Shown here in pieces: positions 15,731-33,565 of a DNA stretch of 64,000 nucleotides (position 1 is the first letter of the stretch; every line of letters begins with the position of its first letter). The notes below the pieces were generated by a model. The model was not told where the DNA came from. It searched no databases and saw nothing but the letters and a program-made list of their open reading frames with translations. Both the position numbers and the translations under genes were made by a program. Location: sequence record NC_022096.1; one strand, given 5' to 3'.

Positions 15731-16017
15731 GGGTTCTCCACTTTCCAGCGCAAGAAGTGTTCTGGGCGATGATACATTGTGTTGCCACCGCCCGTAGATC
15801 GGATCAGGATTCCTGCGGCCTTGCCGTCATCCACGAAGAACACAGAGTCTGTGTCGGGCTTGGTCAGACGGACAGGACGACGCACAAACACCAACTGATA
15901 CTCTGCCGTGGGTCCCATCTGCTTTTTCATGGAGCGTGCCATGACTTGCACACCAACCAGATACAGAAGAACGGGAGAAACAACGGCACCAGCCACGAAG
16001 CCAATGAGGAGGCTCAT
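15727..16017 (-). CDS. membrane-anchored hypothetical protein
   Basis: start MSLLIGF (TAATG overlap); N-terminal TM. Confidence 0.65.
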   Translation of the reverse strand: MSLLIGFVAGAVVSPVLLYLVGVQVMARSMKKQMGPTAEYQLVFVRRPVRLTKPDTDSVFFVDDGKAAGILIRSTGGGNTMYHRPEHFLRWKVENP

Positions 16018-16460
16018 TAGTCCATCAACTCCCGTGCTTTGCGAGCCTCGTGCTCGAAGTTGGCCTCGATGGCGTCCAGCACGTCGTAGATGTACGGGGC
16101 CAGATACTGGTCGACCTTGTCCATGGCTTTCTCGGCCTTGAACCACTTGCGCTCACGCTTTTCCATTTCCGGCCAGTCGTCAGCGTCTTTGACGTACTGC
16201 ATGGCGTACATGGTGACTTCTTGCATCTGGCCATTCTTGACGTAACGGTAGCTGCCGAGCTTCTGGCCAACATCGCCGAGGACGCCGGCCTCTTCGTAGA
16301 CTTCTTTCGCCGCGCTGGCGCGCTCAGTCAGATTGATTTCGACACCGCCCTTGGGGAACACCCATTCTTTGCCGTTGCTGGAAGTGACCAGCAGAATTTC
16401 AATCTTGTTGGAGTCAGTGATACGGAAAACCACACAGCCGGAAGATTTACGAGTACGCAT
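16017..16460 (-). CDS. Nudix hydrolase
   Basis: Nudix box FPKGGVEINLTERASAAKEVYEEAGV; LLVTSS as in DIPP/ApnA-type Nudix enzymes. Confidence 0.9.
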   Translation of the reverse strand: MRTRKSSGCVVFRITDSNKIEILLVTSSNGKEWVFPKGGVEINLTERASAAKEVYEEAGVLGDVGQKLGSYRYVKNGQMQEVTMYAMQYVKDADDWPEMEKRERKWFKAEKAMDKVDQYLAPYIYDVLDAIEANFEHEARKARELMD

Positions 16461-20734: not shown

Positions 20735-20763
20735 AACGAAAAAGGGAGCCCGAAGGCTCCCTT
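20735..20763 (-). terminator. rho-independent terminator
   Basis: AAGGGAGCC-UUCG-GGCTCCCTT then TTTCGTTTC. Confidence 0.9.
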
Positions 20764-20764
20764 G

Positions 20765-21100
20765 TCATAGCACCATGCCGATGCGAACCAGATACAGCTT
20801 GCCTTGGACGTGCAAACTTTTCTGGTCAGTGATTTCGTATGGCAGCAACAGGCCGGCATACTTGCGCCACTTCTTGTCCAGATACTTCACAGCATCCGGC
20901 TTGGTGATCGCGGCATTGAACACCTCGAACCGCTTCCACTGCTTCTCAGTCAGCTCATCCCCGTTGACTGTCAGACCGCGCAGAGCTTGCAGCGCTTTGA
21001 GCACCTTCTTATCCAGCTCCTTGTGGTCTGGGATGAAGAACATCTGGATGCCCTCGGGGATGGTTTCGTAGGTCAGCAGAATCGAACGGGACTCACTCAT
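20765..21100 (-). CDS. hypothetical protein
   Basis: 111 aa. Confidence 0.7.
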   Translation of the reverse strand: MSESRSILLTYETIPEGIQMFFIPDHKELDKKVLKALQALRGLTVNGDELTEKQWKRFEVFNAAITKPDAVKYLDKKWRKYAGLLLPYEITDQKSLHVQGKLYLVRIGMVL

Positions 21101-21641
21101 AGTCGAGTGCCTCGTAACGGTGCGTTGTGAACAGCTTGTGCTCTGCTATCTGCTCCACTTGGTGGAACTTCGGAGGCAGCGGCGGCATGAAGGTATCGCC
21201 GACGTAGCTGTACGTCAGGTGCGTGATGATCGCCTCATCGACGTGCACCTTACCTTCGAAGGCCGCTTCGTACAGGCTCTTACCGCCGATGATAAACACT
21301 CGGCCGTCTTCGCTCAACTGCACGGCTTGTTCGACCAGGCGATTCAGGTCGTCGCTGACGGTGAACAGCTTGATGTGGTCGAAGTTGACAGAGGTGACGT
21401 CCTGCGTGAGCACGCACGGGGCTCGCGTCTGCCAGACCGAACGCGGCATGGACTCGAACGTGCGGCGACCACAGATCAGTGGACTGGTGCCAGTGATCTT
21501 CTTGAACAGCGCCAGTTCTTCTGGGATGTGCCACGGCAGTTTGCCCTTGTCGCCGATGCAGTCGTTTGCAGCCACTGCGGCGATGAGGATAACCTTCGGA
21601 GTCTTCTCAGCTTCCACTGGTTGTTTCTTCTTAGTAGGCAT
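21093..21641 (-). CDS. folA: dihydrofolate reductase
   Basis: LIAAVAANDCIGDKGKLPWHIPEELALFKKIT, ICGRRTFES, FIIGGKSLY, GDTFMP. Confidence 0.95.
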   Translation of the reverse strand: MPTKKKQPVEAEKTPKVILIAAVAANDCIGDKGKLPWHIPEELALFKKITGTSPLICGRRTFESMPRSVWQTRAPCVLTQDVTSVNFDHIKLFTVSDDLNRLVEQAVQLSEDGRVFIIGGKSLYEAAFEGKVHVDEAIITHLTYSYVGDTFMPPLPPKFHQVEQIAEHKLFTTHRYEALDYE

Positions 21642-22086
21642 CCGGGTCTTCCTCGCTGTGTGCGCGACGCAAAGCCGAGAAGCCTTGCTGCAGGTGAGTG
21701 TTGGCAATGTTCAGCCAGCGGCCGTGTCCGCCCTGAACCAAATTGCGCGACATATCGACAGCATCTTTCGACAGTTGCGCGGCTGCATCAATCAGCAGCT
21801 CGATTTCCGCACGTACGGCTTCTTCGCGCTCGCGGATTTCGTTACCATCGATGGCGACTGTCATGCGGTTACCGCCAGTGAAGAACTCGACGTTCACACC
21901 GCCAGATCGAGGATTCCCAGCGACGGAGAAGCCCTGCCCGATCATCGGATGCACGTTGGCATTCAAGTGCGCACTCATTTCACGGTACAGCACTTCGTCC
22001 ATTTGCTGACCCTGGAAGACAGCCAGACGATCAGCCAGAATCAACTTCGCTACGTCGGCAGAGACGTTCAGATTGAGATGGGTCAT
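21631..22086 (-). CDS. Acb2/T4 Vs.4-like sponge domain with N-terminal extension
   Basis: C-terminal GRWLNIANTHLQQGFSALRRA matches the recalled Acb2 C-terminal helix; start MTHLN (TAATG overlap). Confidence 0.6.
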   Translation of the reverse strand: MTHLNLNVSADVAKLILADRLAVFQGQQMDEVLYREMSAHLNANVHPMIGQGFSVAGNPRSGGVNVEFFTGGNRMTVAIDGNEIREREEAVRAEIELLIDAAAQLSKDAVDMSRNLVQGGHGRWLNIANTHLQQGFSALRRAHSEEDPDAY

Positions 22087-22523
22087 TATACCTCCTGAAG
22101 GGTGTTGACGCGCCACGGGGCGGAAACAGATGAGGGCGACAGATCGGGCGAACCTGGCAAGCACATATCGCCACGTTGCAGCGACTTGTTCATGGACTCT
22201 GCGAAAGCCATGCCTGTTGCTTCGAGTTTACCCACAGGCATGGCACATGCGTAGATCGCAATGCCAATTCGCGGATCACTGTGGTAGGCATTCTTGGGCG
22301 CTACGATATTGCTGGGTAGCACATGGCGACCTCGCTTATCGATGCCAAGCTGCGAACTCACTGCGACCAGTTTGAGCTGGGCGTCTTCATCGATGTGTAG
22401 CACGACGAAAACATCCACAAGCGTCTGGCCATTCGCTTGGTGCAAACCCTTGGGATGGTACCAGGTGATTCTGCGACTAGCCCGACGACCGCACAGAGTG
22501 GTGCGATAGCGTTCCTGTTTCAT
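22086..22523 (-). CDS. hypothetical protein
   Basis: 145 aa, AAGGAG upstream, ATGA coupling. Confidence 0.55.
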   Translation of the reverse strand: MKQERYRTTLCGRRASRRITWYHPKGLHQANGQTLVDVFVVLHIDEDAQLKLVAVSSQLGIDKRGRHVLPSNIVAPKNAYHSDPRIGIAIYACAMPVGKLEATGMAFAESMNKSLQRGDMCLPGSPDLSPSSVSAPWRVNTLQEV

Positions 22524-22659: not shown

Positions 22660-24198
22660 TCATCCCATGAGAATCCAGTCGAGCGAGACCACCTCGTCGA
22701 TGGCTTCGGCTATCGCTTCGTCCACGTCAATCCGCAGATCGCCGCGCTCCATGAAAACCCCAACGTCGAACGAACGATCCTGAGCTCCGTTGATTGCGGA
22801 CATCGGGAACTTCAGGTGCAGCACGCAGTTCTGCGCATCCGCCTGGAAGAACCGCTCGACGGGTGGTGTGACCATTCGATGGGTCACGAAGTGGTGCATT
22901 ACTTCCGACGCACGCTGCTGCAGGCTGAACCAGAAGCTGAGGTCGAACGGGCTGCCTTTGTCGCTATAGTCGCGGACATACTTGCTGACTTCGCGCAGCA
23001 CCGACACAACAACGATCAAGTCTGGAAGGACACCGCCGCGAACTGTTCGATTGCCCCAGACAACAGGGCCGCACATAGGCACCTGCCCGACGTAGTTCAT
23101 GCCATTCAGCGCGACGGTGTCACGCCAAGCTGCCGAACGCGGTTGCTTCCAGTCGAATTTGAATCGATCCAGGGCTTTGTCCGTCTTAGCTCCTGCAAGA
23201 GTACCGCCGACCTCCATCAGAATTGAGCGGATGGCCTCACTCGCCTGATCGATGAATATGTCGTTCGCGTTGATGCAGTACCACAGACCGACCTTGGGTT
23301 TGAGAGTTGCGTCGGTCGTGACATTGATCTTGAGAGGCGGGAACTCGATCTGCGAACTGGATGCGCTTTGGACTTCAACGATCTTCTGAATAGGATGCGT
23401 ATCCAGAGTCGCCACGTGCTTGGTGCAGCCGCGCAAGTTGTCGCGCCGAGTCTCCCACGGTCCTTTGGATTTCAGAGTGCGCTCTTGCACAGTGATCGAC
23501 TTCATGAGGACCATAGCCTCGTCGTAAGTCAACACGTCCTCACTCGCAGAACCCCAGCAATGCCTCCAGAGGTTCCACACCTCTTGGTACCCTGCAGGAT
23601 TCCAGCGACCAATCGCGTAATGTCCAGCCACACCATCCGCACGATCTACCAGATACGGCACCCAAGGCGTTTTGGTTTTCGCAGGCTTATCGGCATTGAT
23701 GCACGCAGGACACGTCGGACGAGAACCGCCCCAGAGTTCTTCTGGAGTGTACTCGCCGGAGTTGAGCAGCTCCAGATCACGCGCGGTTGGAACGCAGCAA
23801 AGAACGGCACTACTGTTCGTATGCGTGAACAGCAAGGCACGGAAGTCTTCGTGTTCAACGATCTGTGCAGCTACCCGTTCGTGCATGTTGCCGGCATCTT
23901 CACCTTGAGCGAAAGCGCGCTTCCACGCTTCTGCGGACAGCGCACTCGGGACCTGCAATATCGGCACGAAGCCCCACGCATCTGGACTGGGCTCCATGCG
24001 GTCCAAGAAATTGGCAAGCGACTTGCTCCACTTCTTGCCATTCATGCCGATATAGCTCACCGTGATCGGGTATTCCTCGTTACGGCCCGGATCAGCTTCC
24101 GCGTTCGTGATGTCATACACGGTGTAGCTGATCTTGTTCTTTTTGTGCACCCACGGACTACCGATTCGTGGAATGCCATTCTCGTCGCAGTTCATCAT
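22660..24198 (-). CDS. mosaic protein: N-terminal DUF1653-like domain, C-terminal tail-sheath-like domain
   Basis: GSPWVHKKNKISYTV...VSY...KWSKSLANF; RDTVALNGMNYVGQVPMCGPVVWGNRTV aligns with the sheath at 46753..48339. Confidence 0.7.
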   Translation of the reverse strand: MMNCDENGIPRIGSPWVHKKNKISYTVYDITNAEADPGRNEEYPITVSYIGMNGKKWSKSLANFLDRMEPSPDAWGFVPILQVPSALSAEAWKRAFAQGEDAGNMHERVAAQIVEHEDFRALLFTHTNSSAVLCCVPTARDLELLNSGEYTPEELWGGSRPTCPACINADKPAKTKTPWVPYLVDRADGVAGHYAIGRWNPAGYQEVWNLWRHCWGSASEDVLTYDEAMVLMKSITVQERTLKSKGPWETRRDNLRGCTKHVATLDTHPIQKIVEVQSASSSQIEFPPLKINVTTDATLKPKVGLWYCINANDIFIDQASEAIRSILMEVGGTLAGAKTDKALDRFKFDWKQPRSAAWRDTVALNGMNYVGQVPMCGPVVWGNRTVRGGVLPDLIVVVSVLREVSKYVRDYSDKGSPFDLSFWFSLQQRASEVMHHFVTHRMVTPPVERFFQADAQNCVLHLKFPMSAINGAQDRSFDVGVFMERGDLRIDVDEAIAEAIDEVVSLDWILMG

Positions 24199-27322: not shown

Positions 27323-27531
27323 ACGAGTATCGTCCCTTCTTCGTAGTAAATCCAGTTTGGGTCGGCAGTTGGGTCTTTTGCCAACTCTTCCGCGACAATG
27401 CGCTTGGCAATTTCCTCGTCTTCGACTTCTTGGATGATGTCGCGCGTCAGATCACCTTCTCGGCCTTGCGAACCATCGTGTACGCGGTTCTTATACACGA
27501 TGAAGCCCGGGACAGACATAAACTCAGCCAT
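27319..27531 (-). CDS. hypothetical protein
   Basis: start MAEFMS, GGAG RBS; 70 aa. Confidence 0.65.
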   Translation of the reverse strand: MAEFMSVPGFIVYKNRVHDGSQGREGDLTRDIIQEVEDEEIAKRIVAEELAKDPTADPNWIYYEEGTILV

Positions 27532-27985
27532 TGATGTTCTCCGCATCGACCGTGATCTTGAGTGCAACTTTGGGCTGCATGTCATAGTCGATGTTTACAA
27601 TTCCGCTGTTGGTCAACTTGCGAACCAAGCGAGCGGCATGTCTGGCGCTACGGGCGTGCAGTGTCGAATGCTGCGTGCCATCATCATACAGCACGTGGGC
27701 GACGACACCTCGCTTTTGAAACACCAGACGGAACCGATCAACGATGCCGCCGGTGATGTTGGTGTATCCTTGGACTTTCAGGTGCTCCTTGAAGGCAGCA
27801 GTGACCCTGCGCAGTTCTCGCAGATCATTCGACGCTTGCCTGCGCTTCAAGTGAGCCGCAAGGTCGCGCTTGAGTCGGGTCAACAAGCGTCGAACCTGAA
27901 TCTGTTTCAGCACTTCTTGCTGCTCTGGCGATACCGCCACTTTATCACCCCAGAGCAAGTGCCCCTTCGAAATCGAATTTGACAT
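27524..27985 (-). CDS. hypothetical basic protein
   Basis: 153 aa. Confidence 0.6.
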   Translation of the reverse strand: MSNSISKGHLLWGDKVAVSPEQQEVLKQIQVRRLLTRLKRDLAAHLKRRQASNDLRELRRVTAAFKEHLKVQGYTNITGGIVDRFRLVFQKRGVVAHVLYDDGTQHSTLHARSARHAARLVRKLTNSGIVNIDYDMQPKVALKITVDAENING

Positions 27986-32722: not shown

Positions 32723-33565
32723 TTACTCGGCGTCGATCATTGCCTGTGCAACGATACGGGTCCAGTTCTCGATCTTCGGGTTGTCGAGAATCTGACGTGC
32801 GGTAGCCAGTGGACGTGCGAGCAGTTGTGCTTCACGCGGCACGGCAGTGATGCCGGACGGGATGTCGATGACGCTCACGATGCCCAGGTGCAGATGGCCG
32901 ACATCGTCGCTCTGGTCCCAGATCAGGCCCTTGAACTTCGGCTCCAGCTTCGGGCGCTCGGTGAGTTCCACGCCGTTGCTGTCCAGCAGCAGAACTTCCT
33001 GATCGAACTCACGACCGGCGCTGATGCTCAGGGTTGCGACGACATCCACGGTGCTGTACGCTTCTTCGGTGATGTCGCCGAAATCTGCACCGTTCTCTTT
33101 GGCGACCAACTGCAGGTCACCCACGGACATGAAGTCGGCATGATCGACGTGGCCGCCGTAGCCGACACTGTCGTTACCTGCGAGGCGCGATTCACCGACA
33201 CCCTTGCCGCGCTGGTACATGAAGTAGTAGTACGTGCCTTCGATGATGGTGCGAAGAACGCGATACGGAAGCAGTTGCAGCTTGGTACGGTCGCCCAGGT
33301 AGTTGATCGGCGGGACGCGCTTGTAGTCAAGCTCGATGCCGTGCATGTTGGCGATGTGGTCGATCAGGCCGATGATTTCTTCGCGGCCGGTCTTGCGGTT
33401 GTCGAGTACGTCGCGCAGGCCGCTGATCAGGTGGGTACGAGTCGCTGCGAGGAAATCATCCTCGAATACGGAGTTGAACCCGTTACGCAGACCGAGCTGC
33501 TTGATGAACGGGAAGGCCTCAACGGCCAGAATGTGTTGTGGGTGCTTCATTCGATTGGCTTCCAT
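32723..33565 (-). CDS. Nudix-fold phosphoesterase (COG4112-like MutT family)
   Basis: QLLPY...YQRG...ESRL...SVGYGGHVD...GREFDQEV...DDVGHLHLG. Confidence 0.75.
   Translation of the reverse strand: MEANRMKHPQHILAVEAFPFIKQLGLRNGFNSVFEDDFLAATRTHLISGLRDVLDNRKTGREEIIGLIDHIANMHGIELDYKRVPPINYLGDRTKLQLLPYRVLRTIIEGTYYYFMYQRGKGVGESRLAGNDSVGYGGHVDHADFMSVGDLQLVAKENGADFGDITEEAYSTVDVVATLSISAGREFDQEVLLLDSNGVELTERPKLEPKFKGLIWDQSDDVGHLHLGIVSVIDIPSGITAVPREAQLLARPLATARQILDNPKIENWTRIVAQAMIDAE

Follow-up and report, generated by a model that had tools for sequence, protein, structure and literature searches.

Sponge proteins are a main means by which phages disarm signalling immunity, such as cyclic oligonucleotide-based anti-phage signalling systems (CBASS), Thoeris, Pycsar and type III CRISPR. 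Two such sponges, Acb2 and Tad1, are among the described proteins closest to the one reported here, gp41 of Pseudomonas phage PaBG, which is encoded at 21631..22086 (minus strand) of a 64,000-nucleotide stretch of DNA, hereafter the window, that is identical (100%) to bases 1-64000 of the PaBG genome (KF147891.1 / NC_022096.1). In Acb2, the mutation R67A abolishes, and T74A weakens, the binding of cyclic tri-adenylate (cA3) (PMC10312549). Tad1, a protein of 142 residues, carries Arg and Thr with an identical spacing of seven residues (R88/T95 in CmTad1 and R90/T97 in CbTad1), and this pair both holds cyclic trinucleotides on the three-fold axis of the hexamer and is needed for the hexamer to form; the Tad1 pocket for glycocyclic ADP-ribose (gcADPR) and cyclic dinucleotides is built from the beta2-beta3 and beta4-alpha1 loops together with the C-terminal tail. 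Additions to the hairpin core are also on record. In Acb2_43 extra terminal elements reshape the pocket and shift the specificity to 3' cyclic ADP-ribose (3'cADPR) (Hadary et al., 10.1101/2025.08.24.671296), and Acb2 homologues with added beta-strands bind 3'cADPR, not CBASS signals (10.1101/2025.08.24.671296).

The open reading frame (ORF) of gp41 corresponds to the annotated coding sequence PaBG_00041 (AGS81925.1), a 'hypothetical protein' in GenBank. A sequence-only reading of the window had placed this ORF correctly, and the strings that it quoted are present, namely, FFTGGNR (residues 68-74) and the stretch A78-A142. As detailed below, gp41 is best regarded as a novel architecture within the Acb2/Tad1 sponge superfamily, and it probably binds cyclic trinucleotides. 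Its hairpin sequence is Acb2-like and its general plan is Tad1-like, and it is a strict member of neither family, because the dinucleotide site and the size of Acb2, as well as sequence or fold similarity to solved Tad1 structures, were looked for and were not found.

Homology of the C-terminal hairpin to Acb2 and Tad1

The C-terminal helical hairpin of gp41 spans residues 86-143 (21658..21831, minus strand), and its relationship to the Acb2/Tad1 hairpin domain was evaluated with Pfam, PDB, BLASTP, hhalign and a shuffle control. First, the top Pfam match of gp41 was PF24729, Acb2_Tad1_hairpin (Acb2/Tad1, hairpin domain; formerly DUF7681), with an expectation value (E) of 3.7e-5 and 24.3 bits over residues 82-142, the curated gathering threshold of this family being 27 bits. 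PF24729 was likewise the top Pfam match for 10 of the 13 gp41 family members, with a best E of 1e-5 among the 13, and a precomputed match to it exists in the protein collection for P0008 and P0136; no gp41 relative with a printed bit score attained 27 against PF24729 (19.2 for P0009, 22.4 for P0136 and 18.9 for P0006). Second, the top PHROG match was phrog_717 (E 7e-4), identified as the Acb2 phrog by the match of JBD67 Acb2 to it (1.4e-28). Third, the best match among solved structures was 'p26', the Acb2 of phage PaMx33 (8H2J, 8IXZ), in an alignment covering residues 92-145 whose E fell with the depth of the query, from 0.5 with the single sequence to 0.076 with five sequences and 0.004 with 13 sequences (profile A2). 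NCBIfam returned nothing for gp41.

These values have to be read against the divergence of the family itself. A JBD67-type Acb2 profile, used as a yardstick, matches the genuine Acb2 of phage T4 (Vs.4, 7UQ2) at an E of only 0.0027, and therefore a similarity at the level of gp41 is normal within the family. The gp41 family profile does not retrieve T4 Vs.4 (7UQ2). Thus, from the initial proposal that the last ~65 residues resemble both Acb2 and T4 Vs.4, the Acb2 hairpin is upheld by PF24729, phrog_717, p26 and BLASTP, but a specific likeness to Vs.4 could not be detected.

The closest link to a bona fide member of the hairpin family came from a tblastn search of gp41 against 50,697 phage genomes (2.3 Gb), which returned PaBG and, at E 3e-3, a 74-residue protein of Aeromonas phage GomatiRiver_11 (WKW84351.1). 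This protein matches PF24729 from end to end (1.4e-14), shares 51% identity with gp41 over residues 98-142 (45 residues) in a pairwise BLASTP comparison (E 7e-12), and is aligned with the gp41 family by hhalign at a probability of 96.8%. When the gp41 family was aligned with the Acb2 alignment, hhalign gave a score of 34.3, compared with 9.5 for the reversed alignment and a maximum of 21.0 over 60 column shuffles. The search also works in the reverse direction: when 1.84 billion representatives are searched with the gp41 family profile, P0014 and P0015, both true PF24729 proteins, are retrieved. Based on these sequence comparisons, we consider the homology of the gp41 hairpin to that of Acb2 and Tad1 as established.

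The sensitivity of the model matters for this result. In a plain HMMER search of the 907 ORFs of the window with a narrow JBD67-type Acb2 profile, gp41 (E 0.033) was not separated from PaBG_00050 (E 0.021), and therefore the signal needs broad or profile-profile models. PaBG_00050 itself (27524-27985, minus strand), a further small protein encoded in the gene array of gp41, was considered as a second hairpin gene, but has no Pfam match and was treated as a chance hit.

Some peculiarities of the retrieved proteins may be recorded at this point. In the metagenomic protein P0014 (89 residues), the motif of the second hairpin helix occurs as a tandem pair, which Pfam reports as two PF24729 stretches, an unusual duplication. 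The gene for WKW84351.1 (1417-1641 of contig L013; OP967013.2) is annotated as 'hypothetical' and lies directly upstream of nrdB, a gene of nucleotide metabolism; a near-identical match to this protein was found in Aeromonas phage AhFM11. In addition, the 2377-residue protein P0012, retrieved with eight 'matched stretches', was rejected as a spurious match, as it is a repetitive, secreted Kelch protein of the type IX secretion system (T9SS) kind, with ~1.6 bits per repeat against A2.

Putative ligand-site residues and the N-terminal domain

HMMER alignments place R123 of gp41 (codon at 21718..21720, minus strand) with R67 of Acb2, a ligand of the cyclic-trinucleotide phosphates, and T130 (codon at 21697..21699, minus strand) with T74, the second ligand, seven residues after the Arg. 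R123 is conserved in all 13 members of the gp41 family and T130 in 12 of them, which puts both among the most conserved positions of the protein; R140 is likewise invariant. The situation at the dinucleotide site of Acb2 is different. In the Acb2 alignment (A3), the Tyr (Y11) of the Gly-Tyr-Arg-x-Leu motif and K26 are invariant. No residue of gp41 aligns with this motif, and HMMER sets K26 opposite R92, at a position that is variable in the gp41 family (Arg in 2/13), from which it follows that the Acb2 dinucleotide site is not conserved in gp41.

The tail of gp41 adds one more candidate contact, as P148 falls in the same MAFFT column (alignment A4) as the conserved C-terminal Pro of Acb2, which in PaMx33 Acb2 (P90) contacts the base of cyclic GMP-AMP (cGAMP) (10.1101/2025.08.24.671296). 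However, the same nucleotides encode the start of the overlapping downstream gene, a dihydrofolate reductase (DHFR), and therefore the conservation of the tail cannot be read as protein function alone.

The part that precedes the hairpin, residues 1-85 (21832..22086, minus strand), was analyzed with structural models and with column counts in the family alignment. An AlphaFold2 (AF2) monomer model built with the 13-sequence alignment A2 reached a mean predicted local distance difference test (pLDDT) of 84 and a predicted template modelling score (pTM) of 0.73; an earlier run with five close sequences (pLDDT 51) was discarded. In this model, residues 1-85 adopt an alpha-alpha-beta-beta-beta arrangement, in which two helices (10-24 and 31-44) precede three strands (51-58, 63-70 and 73-79), after which the hairpin is formed by two long antiparallel helices (88-114 and 122-143), the element that makes up the core of Acb2 and Tad1. 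The independent model of gp41 in BFVD superposes on ours with a template modelling (TM) score of 0.92. The conserved positions of the domain are L21, F24, D30, E36, L41, V66 and the G71-G72-x-R74 turn; within this beta-turn, G71 is found in 11, G72 in 9 and R74 in 9 of the 13 sequences, and the loop between helices 1 and 2 is conserved as well (F24, D30, E36).

Residues 1-85 had no match in Pfam, PHROGs, NCBIfam, the PDB sequences, Foldseek PDB or BFVD. The top Foldseek PDB matches of the model were GyrB fragments with TM scores of about 0.3, which were dismissed as not meaningful, and the sole BFVD match was gp41 itself. The models thus predict that residues 1-85 are a folded domain without detectable relatives, rather than a disordered extension or a known domain fused to the hairpin.

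This modifies much of what had been read from the letters of this region. The proposed N-terminal extension of ~80 residues is confirmed, with about 85 residues preceding the hairpin, but the idea of a fusion to a second functional domain is not supported: the N-terminal part is conserved in the family and folded in the AF2 model, yet it matches no known domain in the libraries listed above. The notion that the GYRxL motif of Acb2 is replaced by FFTGGNR is not supported, as no tool aligns the two and FFTGGNR is modelled as the turn of a beta-hairpin (strands 63-70 and 73-79), not as the N-terminal helix of Acb2. Nor can the conserved Lys be said to have become Arg: K26 does stand opposite R92 in the HMMER alignment, but, as noted, Arg is the minority state of that column.

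Genomic context, distribution and divergence

PaBG, a jumbo myovirus (258 kb) belonging to the genus Baikalvirus, was isolated on P. aeruginosa PAO1. Its gene 41 runs from the ATG at 22086 to the TAA at 21631-21633, encoding 151 residues plus the stop, as assigned from the translated ORF, the GenBank annotation and the starts of homologues. The same start Met is present in all gp41 homologues (24-98% identity), and a Shine-Dalgarno-like AGGAGG can be read in the sequence 4 nt 5' of the ATG (22091..22096, minus strand). Upstream, the stop codon of PaBG_00042 (22086..22523, minus strand; 145 residues), a variable neighbour with no Pfam or PHROG match, overlaps the ATG of gp41 by 1 nt. Downstream lies the constant neighbour of the family, the DHFR gene PaBG_00040 (21093..21641, minus strand; Pfam DHFR_1, 1.3e-30), whose first 11 nt overlap the end of gene 41 (21631-21641, minus strand) and whose start codon is preceded by a GAGGA within Glu-Glu-Asp codons. 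The tail of gp41, residues 144-151 plus the stop (21631..21657, minus strand), is thus dual-coding with the ribosome-binding site and the start codon of DHFR.

PaBG_00039 (20765..21100, minus strand; 111 residues, phrog_4658) is the final gene of the apparent transcription unit. Directly 3' of it, a consensus scan marked a terminator-like hairpin (20742..20763, minus strand) with a 9-bp stem, six G-C pairs and a T-rich tail, a pattern match only, and a non-coding gap of 256 bp separates this hairpin from gene 38. Given the 1-nt overlap of genes 42 and 41, the DHFR ATG 11 nt inside gene 41 and the hairpin after gene 39, genes 42-41-40-39 look like one tightly coupled unit. The region is without broken genes. 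Gene 41 goes unmentioned in the PaBG genome paper (PMC7412058), the literature that we found on the lineage of PaBG-like jumbo phages names no counter-defence gene, and identifiers of PaBG were not found in the supplement of a preprint on sponge diversity, the files of which are possibly incomplete.

The family is small. Four close clusters share 61-98% identity with gp41, and about ten gp41-family clusters, of 145-158 residues, are found among the 1.84 billion representatives; a profile search of a 5.8-billion-protein collection gave eight proteins, of which only P0136 was new. No gp41 relative other than PaBG itself was recovered in a scan of IMG/VR, and none in a scan of JGI metagenomes, while among deposited phage genomes PaBG is the sole isolate with a family member. 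All members of the family are full length and co-linear in the 13-sequence alignment. The novel N-terminal domain was seen solely in a small clade of PaBG-like phages.

DHFR is the next gene in every contig with a gp41 family member, with an overlap of 11-14 nt in all of them except L010, where ~115 nt separate the two genes. The overlap, which L002, L005, L009 and L011 all carry, is kept even in relatives that are just 25-34% identical to gp41. According to tblastn, however, the whole block is syntenic across the contigs, with the GH108 lysozyme, the C-terminal part of gp43, gene 39 and gene 36 retained, and therefore the adjacency of DHFR is most simply inherited within one PaBG-like clade. 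For this reason we down-weighted it as proof of a functional link.

Within this block, gp41 is among the fastest-diverging genes. In the relative L003, gp41 is 61% identical, compared with 78% for DHFR and 84-96% for four other flanking genes, the upstream gene 43 being at 45%. In the distant contigs, the identities are 25-34% for gp41, 37-44% for DHFR and 66% for the GH108 lysozyme, which is present in L005 only. Such a pattern fits an arms-race gene, and it fits a dedicated partner of DHFR less well.

The block shows other rearrangements, which we report for completeness. PaBG_00042 is absent from this place in the closest relatives (L002-L004), occupies another place in L005 (51% identity) and is a direct neighbour in L011 (45%), as a mobile element of the surroundings inside an otherwise syntenic block. 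In PaBG_00043 (22660-24198, minus strand; 512 residues), just the last ~70 residues are conserved in distant relatives (58-64% identity), where they occur as stand-alone genes encoding 71 residues (5789-6004 of L005) and 133 residues (2-403 of L011, the match being the last ~72 residues); in the closest relatives a version of 426 residues is found that is just 45% identical. Comparison of these sequences suggests that gene 43 became longer through N-terminal accretion. In L011, the family member P0011 is followed by a DHFR of 289 residues (1294-2163), of which only 115-249 are the DHFR domain, with an N-terminal extension of ~110 residues. Finally, the same array of small early-type genes that holds gp41 contains two NUDIX hydrolase genes, PaBG_00030 and PaBG_00060 (16017-16460 and 32723-33550, minus strand), and the metal-dependent phosphohydrolase PaBG_00057.

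Candidate functions and comparison with described sponges

The initial suggestion of a diverged sponge with an altered ligand range remains the best reading of gp41, in that the homology of the hairpin is real and the dinucleotide site of Acb2 has no counterpart; as for the oligomer, the ligand and the anti-defence role, the following is what we infer. gp41 would be made as part of the transcription unit formed by gene 42, gene 41, DHFR and gene 39. Its hairpins would assemble into a trimer-of-dimers hexamer, as those of Acb2 and Tad1 do, such that R123 of one protomer and T130 of its neighbour would line a pocket on the three-fold axis. This pocket may hold the three phosphates of a cyclic trinucleotide, for instance the cA3 or cyclic AMP-AMP-GMP (cAAG) of type III CBASS, and sequestration of the signal would prevent activation of the effector. 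A second pocket, if there is one, would need to be supplied by the N-terminal domain, with the loop between helices 1 and 2, the G-G-x-R turn and the Pro-containing tail as candidates; by analogy with the ligand loops and tail of Tad1, these elements could form one.

Several observations weigh against gp41 being a cyclic-trinucleotide sponge. The score of gp41 against PF24729, 24.3 bits, is under the cut-off of 27, and what similarity can be detected lies mostly in the second helix and in the last part of the first, over 36-45 columns. Neither Acb2 nor Tad1 was among the best 50 Foldseek PDB matches of the model, with none at E <= 0.001. The case of T4 Acb2 illustrates that having one residue of the Arg/Thr pair does not guarantee the binding of trinucleotides (PMC10312549), and the closest bona fide relative, the 74-residue protein of the Aeromonas phage, is without a Thr equivalent to T130. 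Moreover, the constant association with DHFR could indicate a different function, and the host of isolation, PAO1, is described as being without known cyclic-nucleotide signalling systems.

If the resemblance to Acb2 were only that of amphipathic helices, with gp41 unrelated, then its position under the Pfam gathering score, its lack of separation from PaBG_00050 with the narrow JBD67-type profile (E 0.033 vs 0.021) and the silence of Foldseek would all be expected; yet three independent libraries concur, a bona fide member is reached both by BLASTP (E 7e-12) and hhalign (96.8%) and again by tblastn (E 3e-3), the hhalign score of 34.3 exceeds the best shuffle (21.0), and PaBG_00050 is without Pfam support, which leaves chance close to refuted. 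It would also be improbable, albeit less so, that the hairpin is a generic helical module by ancestry in a protein that acts as a direct-binding inhibitor of a host or phage protein, or that serves another, unrelated purpose. Just ~45 residues are demonstrably homologous, and over half of gp41 is novel, as such an explanation would have it; against it, the invariant or nearly invariant R123, T130 and R140 include precisely the ligand-binding pair of Acb2, and every characterised relative is a small-molecule sponge.

The two remaining alternatives deserve more attention, although we regard both as unlikely. The first of these to consider is that gp41 sponges other signals, with the N-terminal domain and the tail forming, where the two chains of a dimer meet, a Tad1-like pocket for Thoeris signals derived from ADP-ribose or for cyclic dinucleotides, and with the Arg/Thr pair mainly holding the oligomer together. 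The parallels with Tad1 are a beta-sheet N-terminal domain, two long helices and ~150 residues, and the Tad1 pair is also required for hexamer formation; the conserved G71-G72-x-R74 turn and the Pro-containing tail correspond in kind to the ligand loops of Tad1, and the Acb2 homologues with added beta-strands set a precedent with their binding of 3'cADPR, not CBASS signals. Nevertheless, Tad1 was retrieved neither by sequence (E <= 10) nor among the best 50 Foldseek matches, and the modelled alpha-alpha-beta-beta-beta topology differs from the four-stranded sheet of Tad1. Somewhat harder to sustain is a metabolic role (nucleotides or folate) shared with the translationally coupled DHFR, for example as an accessory or regulatory subunit, in which the hairpin would be a mere oligomerisation scaffold. 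The persistence of DHFR as the next gene, overlapping by 11-14 nt even at 25-30% identity (L010, with its gap of ~115 nt, apart), while other neighbours vary and gene 42 is present, absent or moved, speaks for such a role, as does the hairpin protein of the Aeromonas phage, which is also directly upstream of nrdB. Common descent of a syntenic block in one phage clade nonetheless explains the adjacency, gp41 diverges faster than DHFR (61% vs 74-78%; 25-34% vs 37-44%), which would be unusual for a dedicated partner, and the literature that we found gives no characterised member of the hairpin superfamily with such a function.

It is tempting to combine these elements, albeit as a doubtful proposition. 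gp41 may have elaborated an Acb2-type hairpin independently, in a Tad1-like manner, with a second pocket, created by the N-terminal domain, for a class of signals that no member of this superfamily is yet known to sponge, so that one protein would neutralise two pathways; or the coupling with DHFR may tie counter-defence to folate and nucleotide metabolism.

gp41 represents a third architecture on a common hairpin, beside Acb2 and Tad1, with an N-terminal domain that has no known relative. Should the three-fold trinucleotide pocket be kept and the N-terminal domain form another, the specificity of sponges would be evolving by domain accretion, and annotators would gain a handle on 'hypothetical' proteins that escape the present family cut-offs. 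For the time being the practical impact is modest, because the family is very small and its function only predicted.

In comparison with Acb2, as represented by the proteins of PaMx33 (8H2J, 8IXZ) and JBD67 (YP_009625958.1), gp41 shares the two-helix hairpin core, with a second helix that is about 40-50% identical over 21-36 residues. Common to both are the Arg and Thr seven residues apart (R67/T74 in Acb2, where they bind the phosphates of cA3, and R123/T130 in gp41), a conserved Arg near the end of the helix, a C-terminal Pro and the host genus. They differ in what precedes the hairpin, as Acb2, with 92-108 residues, has a short N-terminal helix with the invariant Gly-Tyr-Arg-x-Leu followed by K26, which bind cyclic dinucleotides, whereas gp41, with 151 residues, has an alpha/beta domain of 85 residues. 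WKW84351.1 of GomatiRiver_11 (Straboviridae), the closest bona fide relative found, is half the size of gp41, has the N-terminal Tyr motif of the Acb2 type, and lacks both the Thr of T130 and the N-terminal alpha/beta domain.

With Tad1 (SBSphiJ7 Tad1; CbTad1, 7UAV/7UAW; CmTad1, 8KBB), the hairpin of which belongs to the same Pfam family that gp41 matches (PF24729), the resemblance is one of general plan in the model of gp41, namely, a small N-terminal domain with an antiparallel beta-sheet followed by two long helices, in ~140-150 residues. No Tad1 chain was found among the solved structures at E <= 10 with the single gp41 sequence, profile A1 or profile A2, and, judged from the published description of Tad1, its four-stranded sheet without N-terminal helices contrasts with the two helices and three-stranded sheet modelled for gp41. 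Acb2_43, again compared by its description, adds only two short beta-strands to the hairpin core, whereas gp41 adds a domain of 85 residues.

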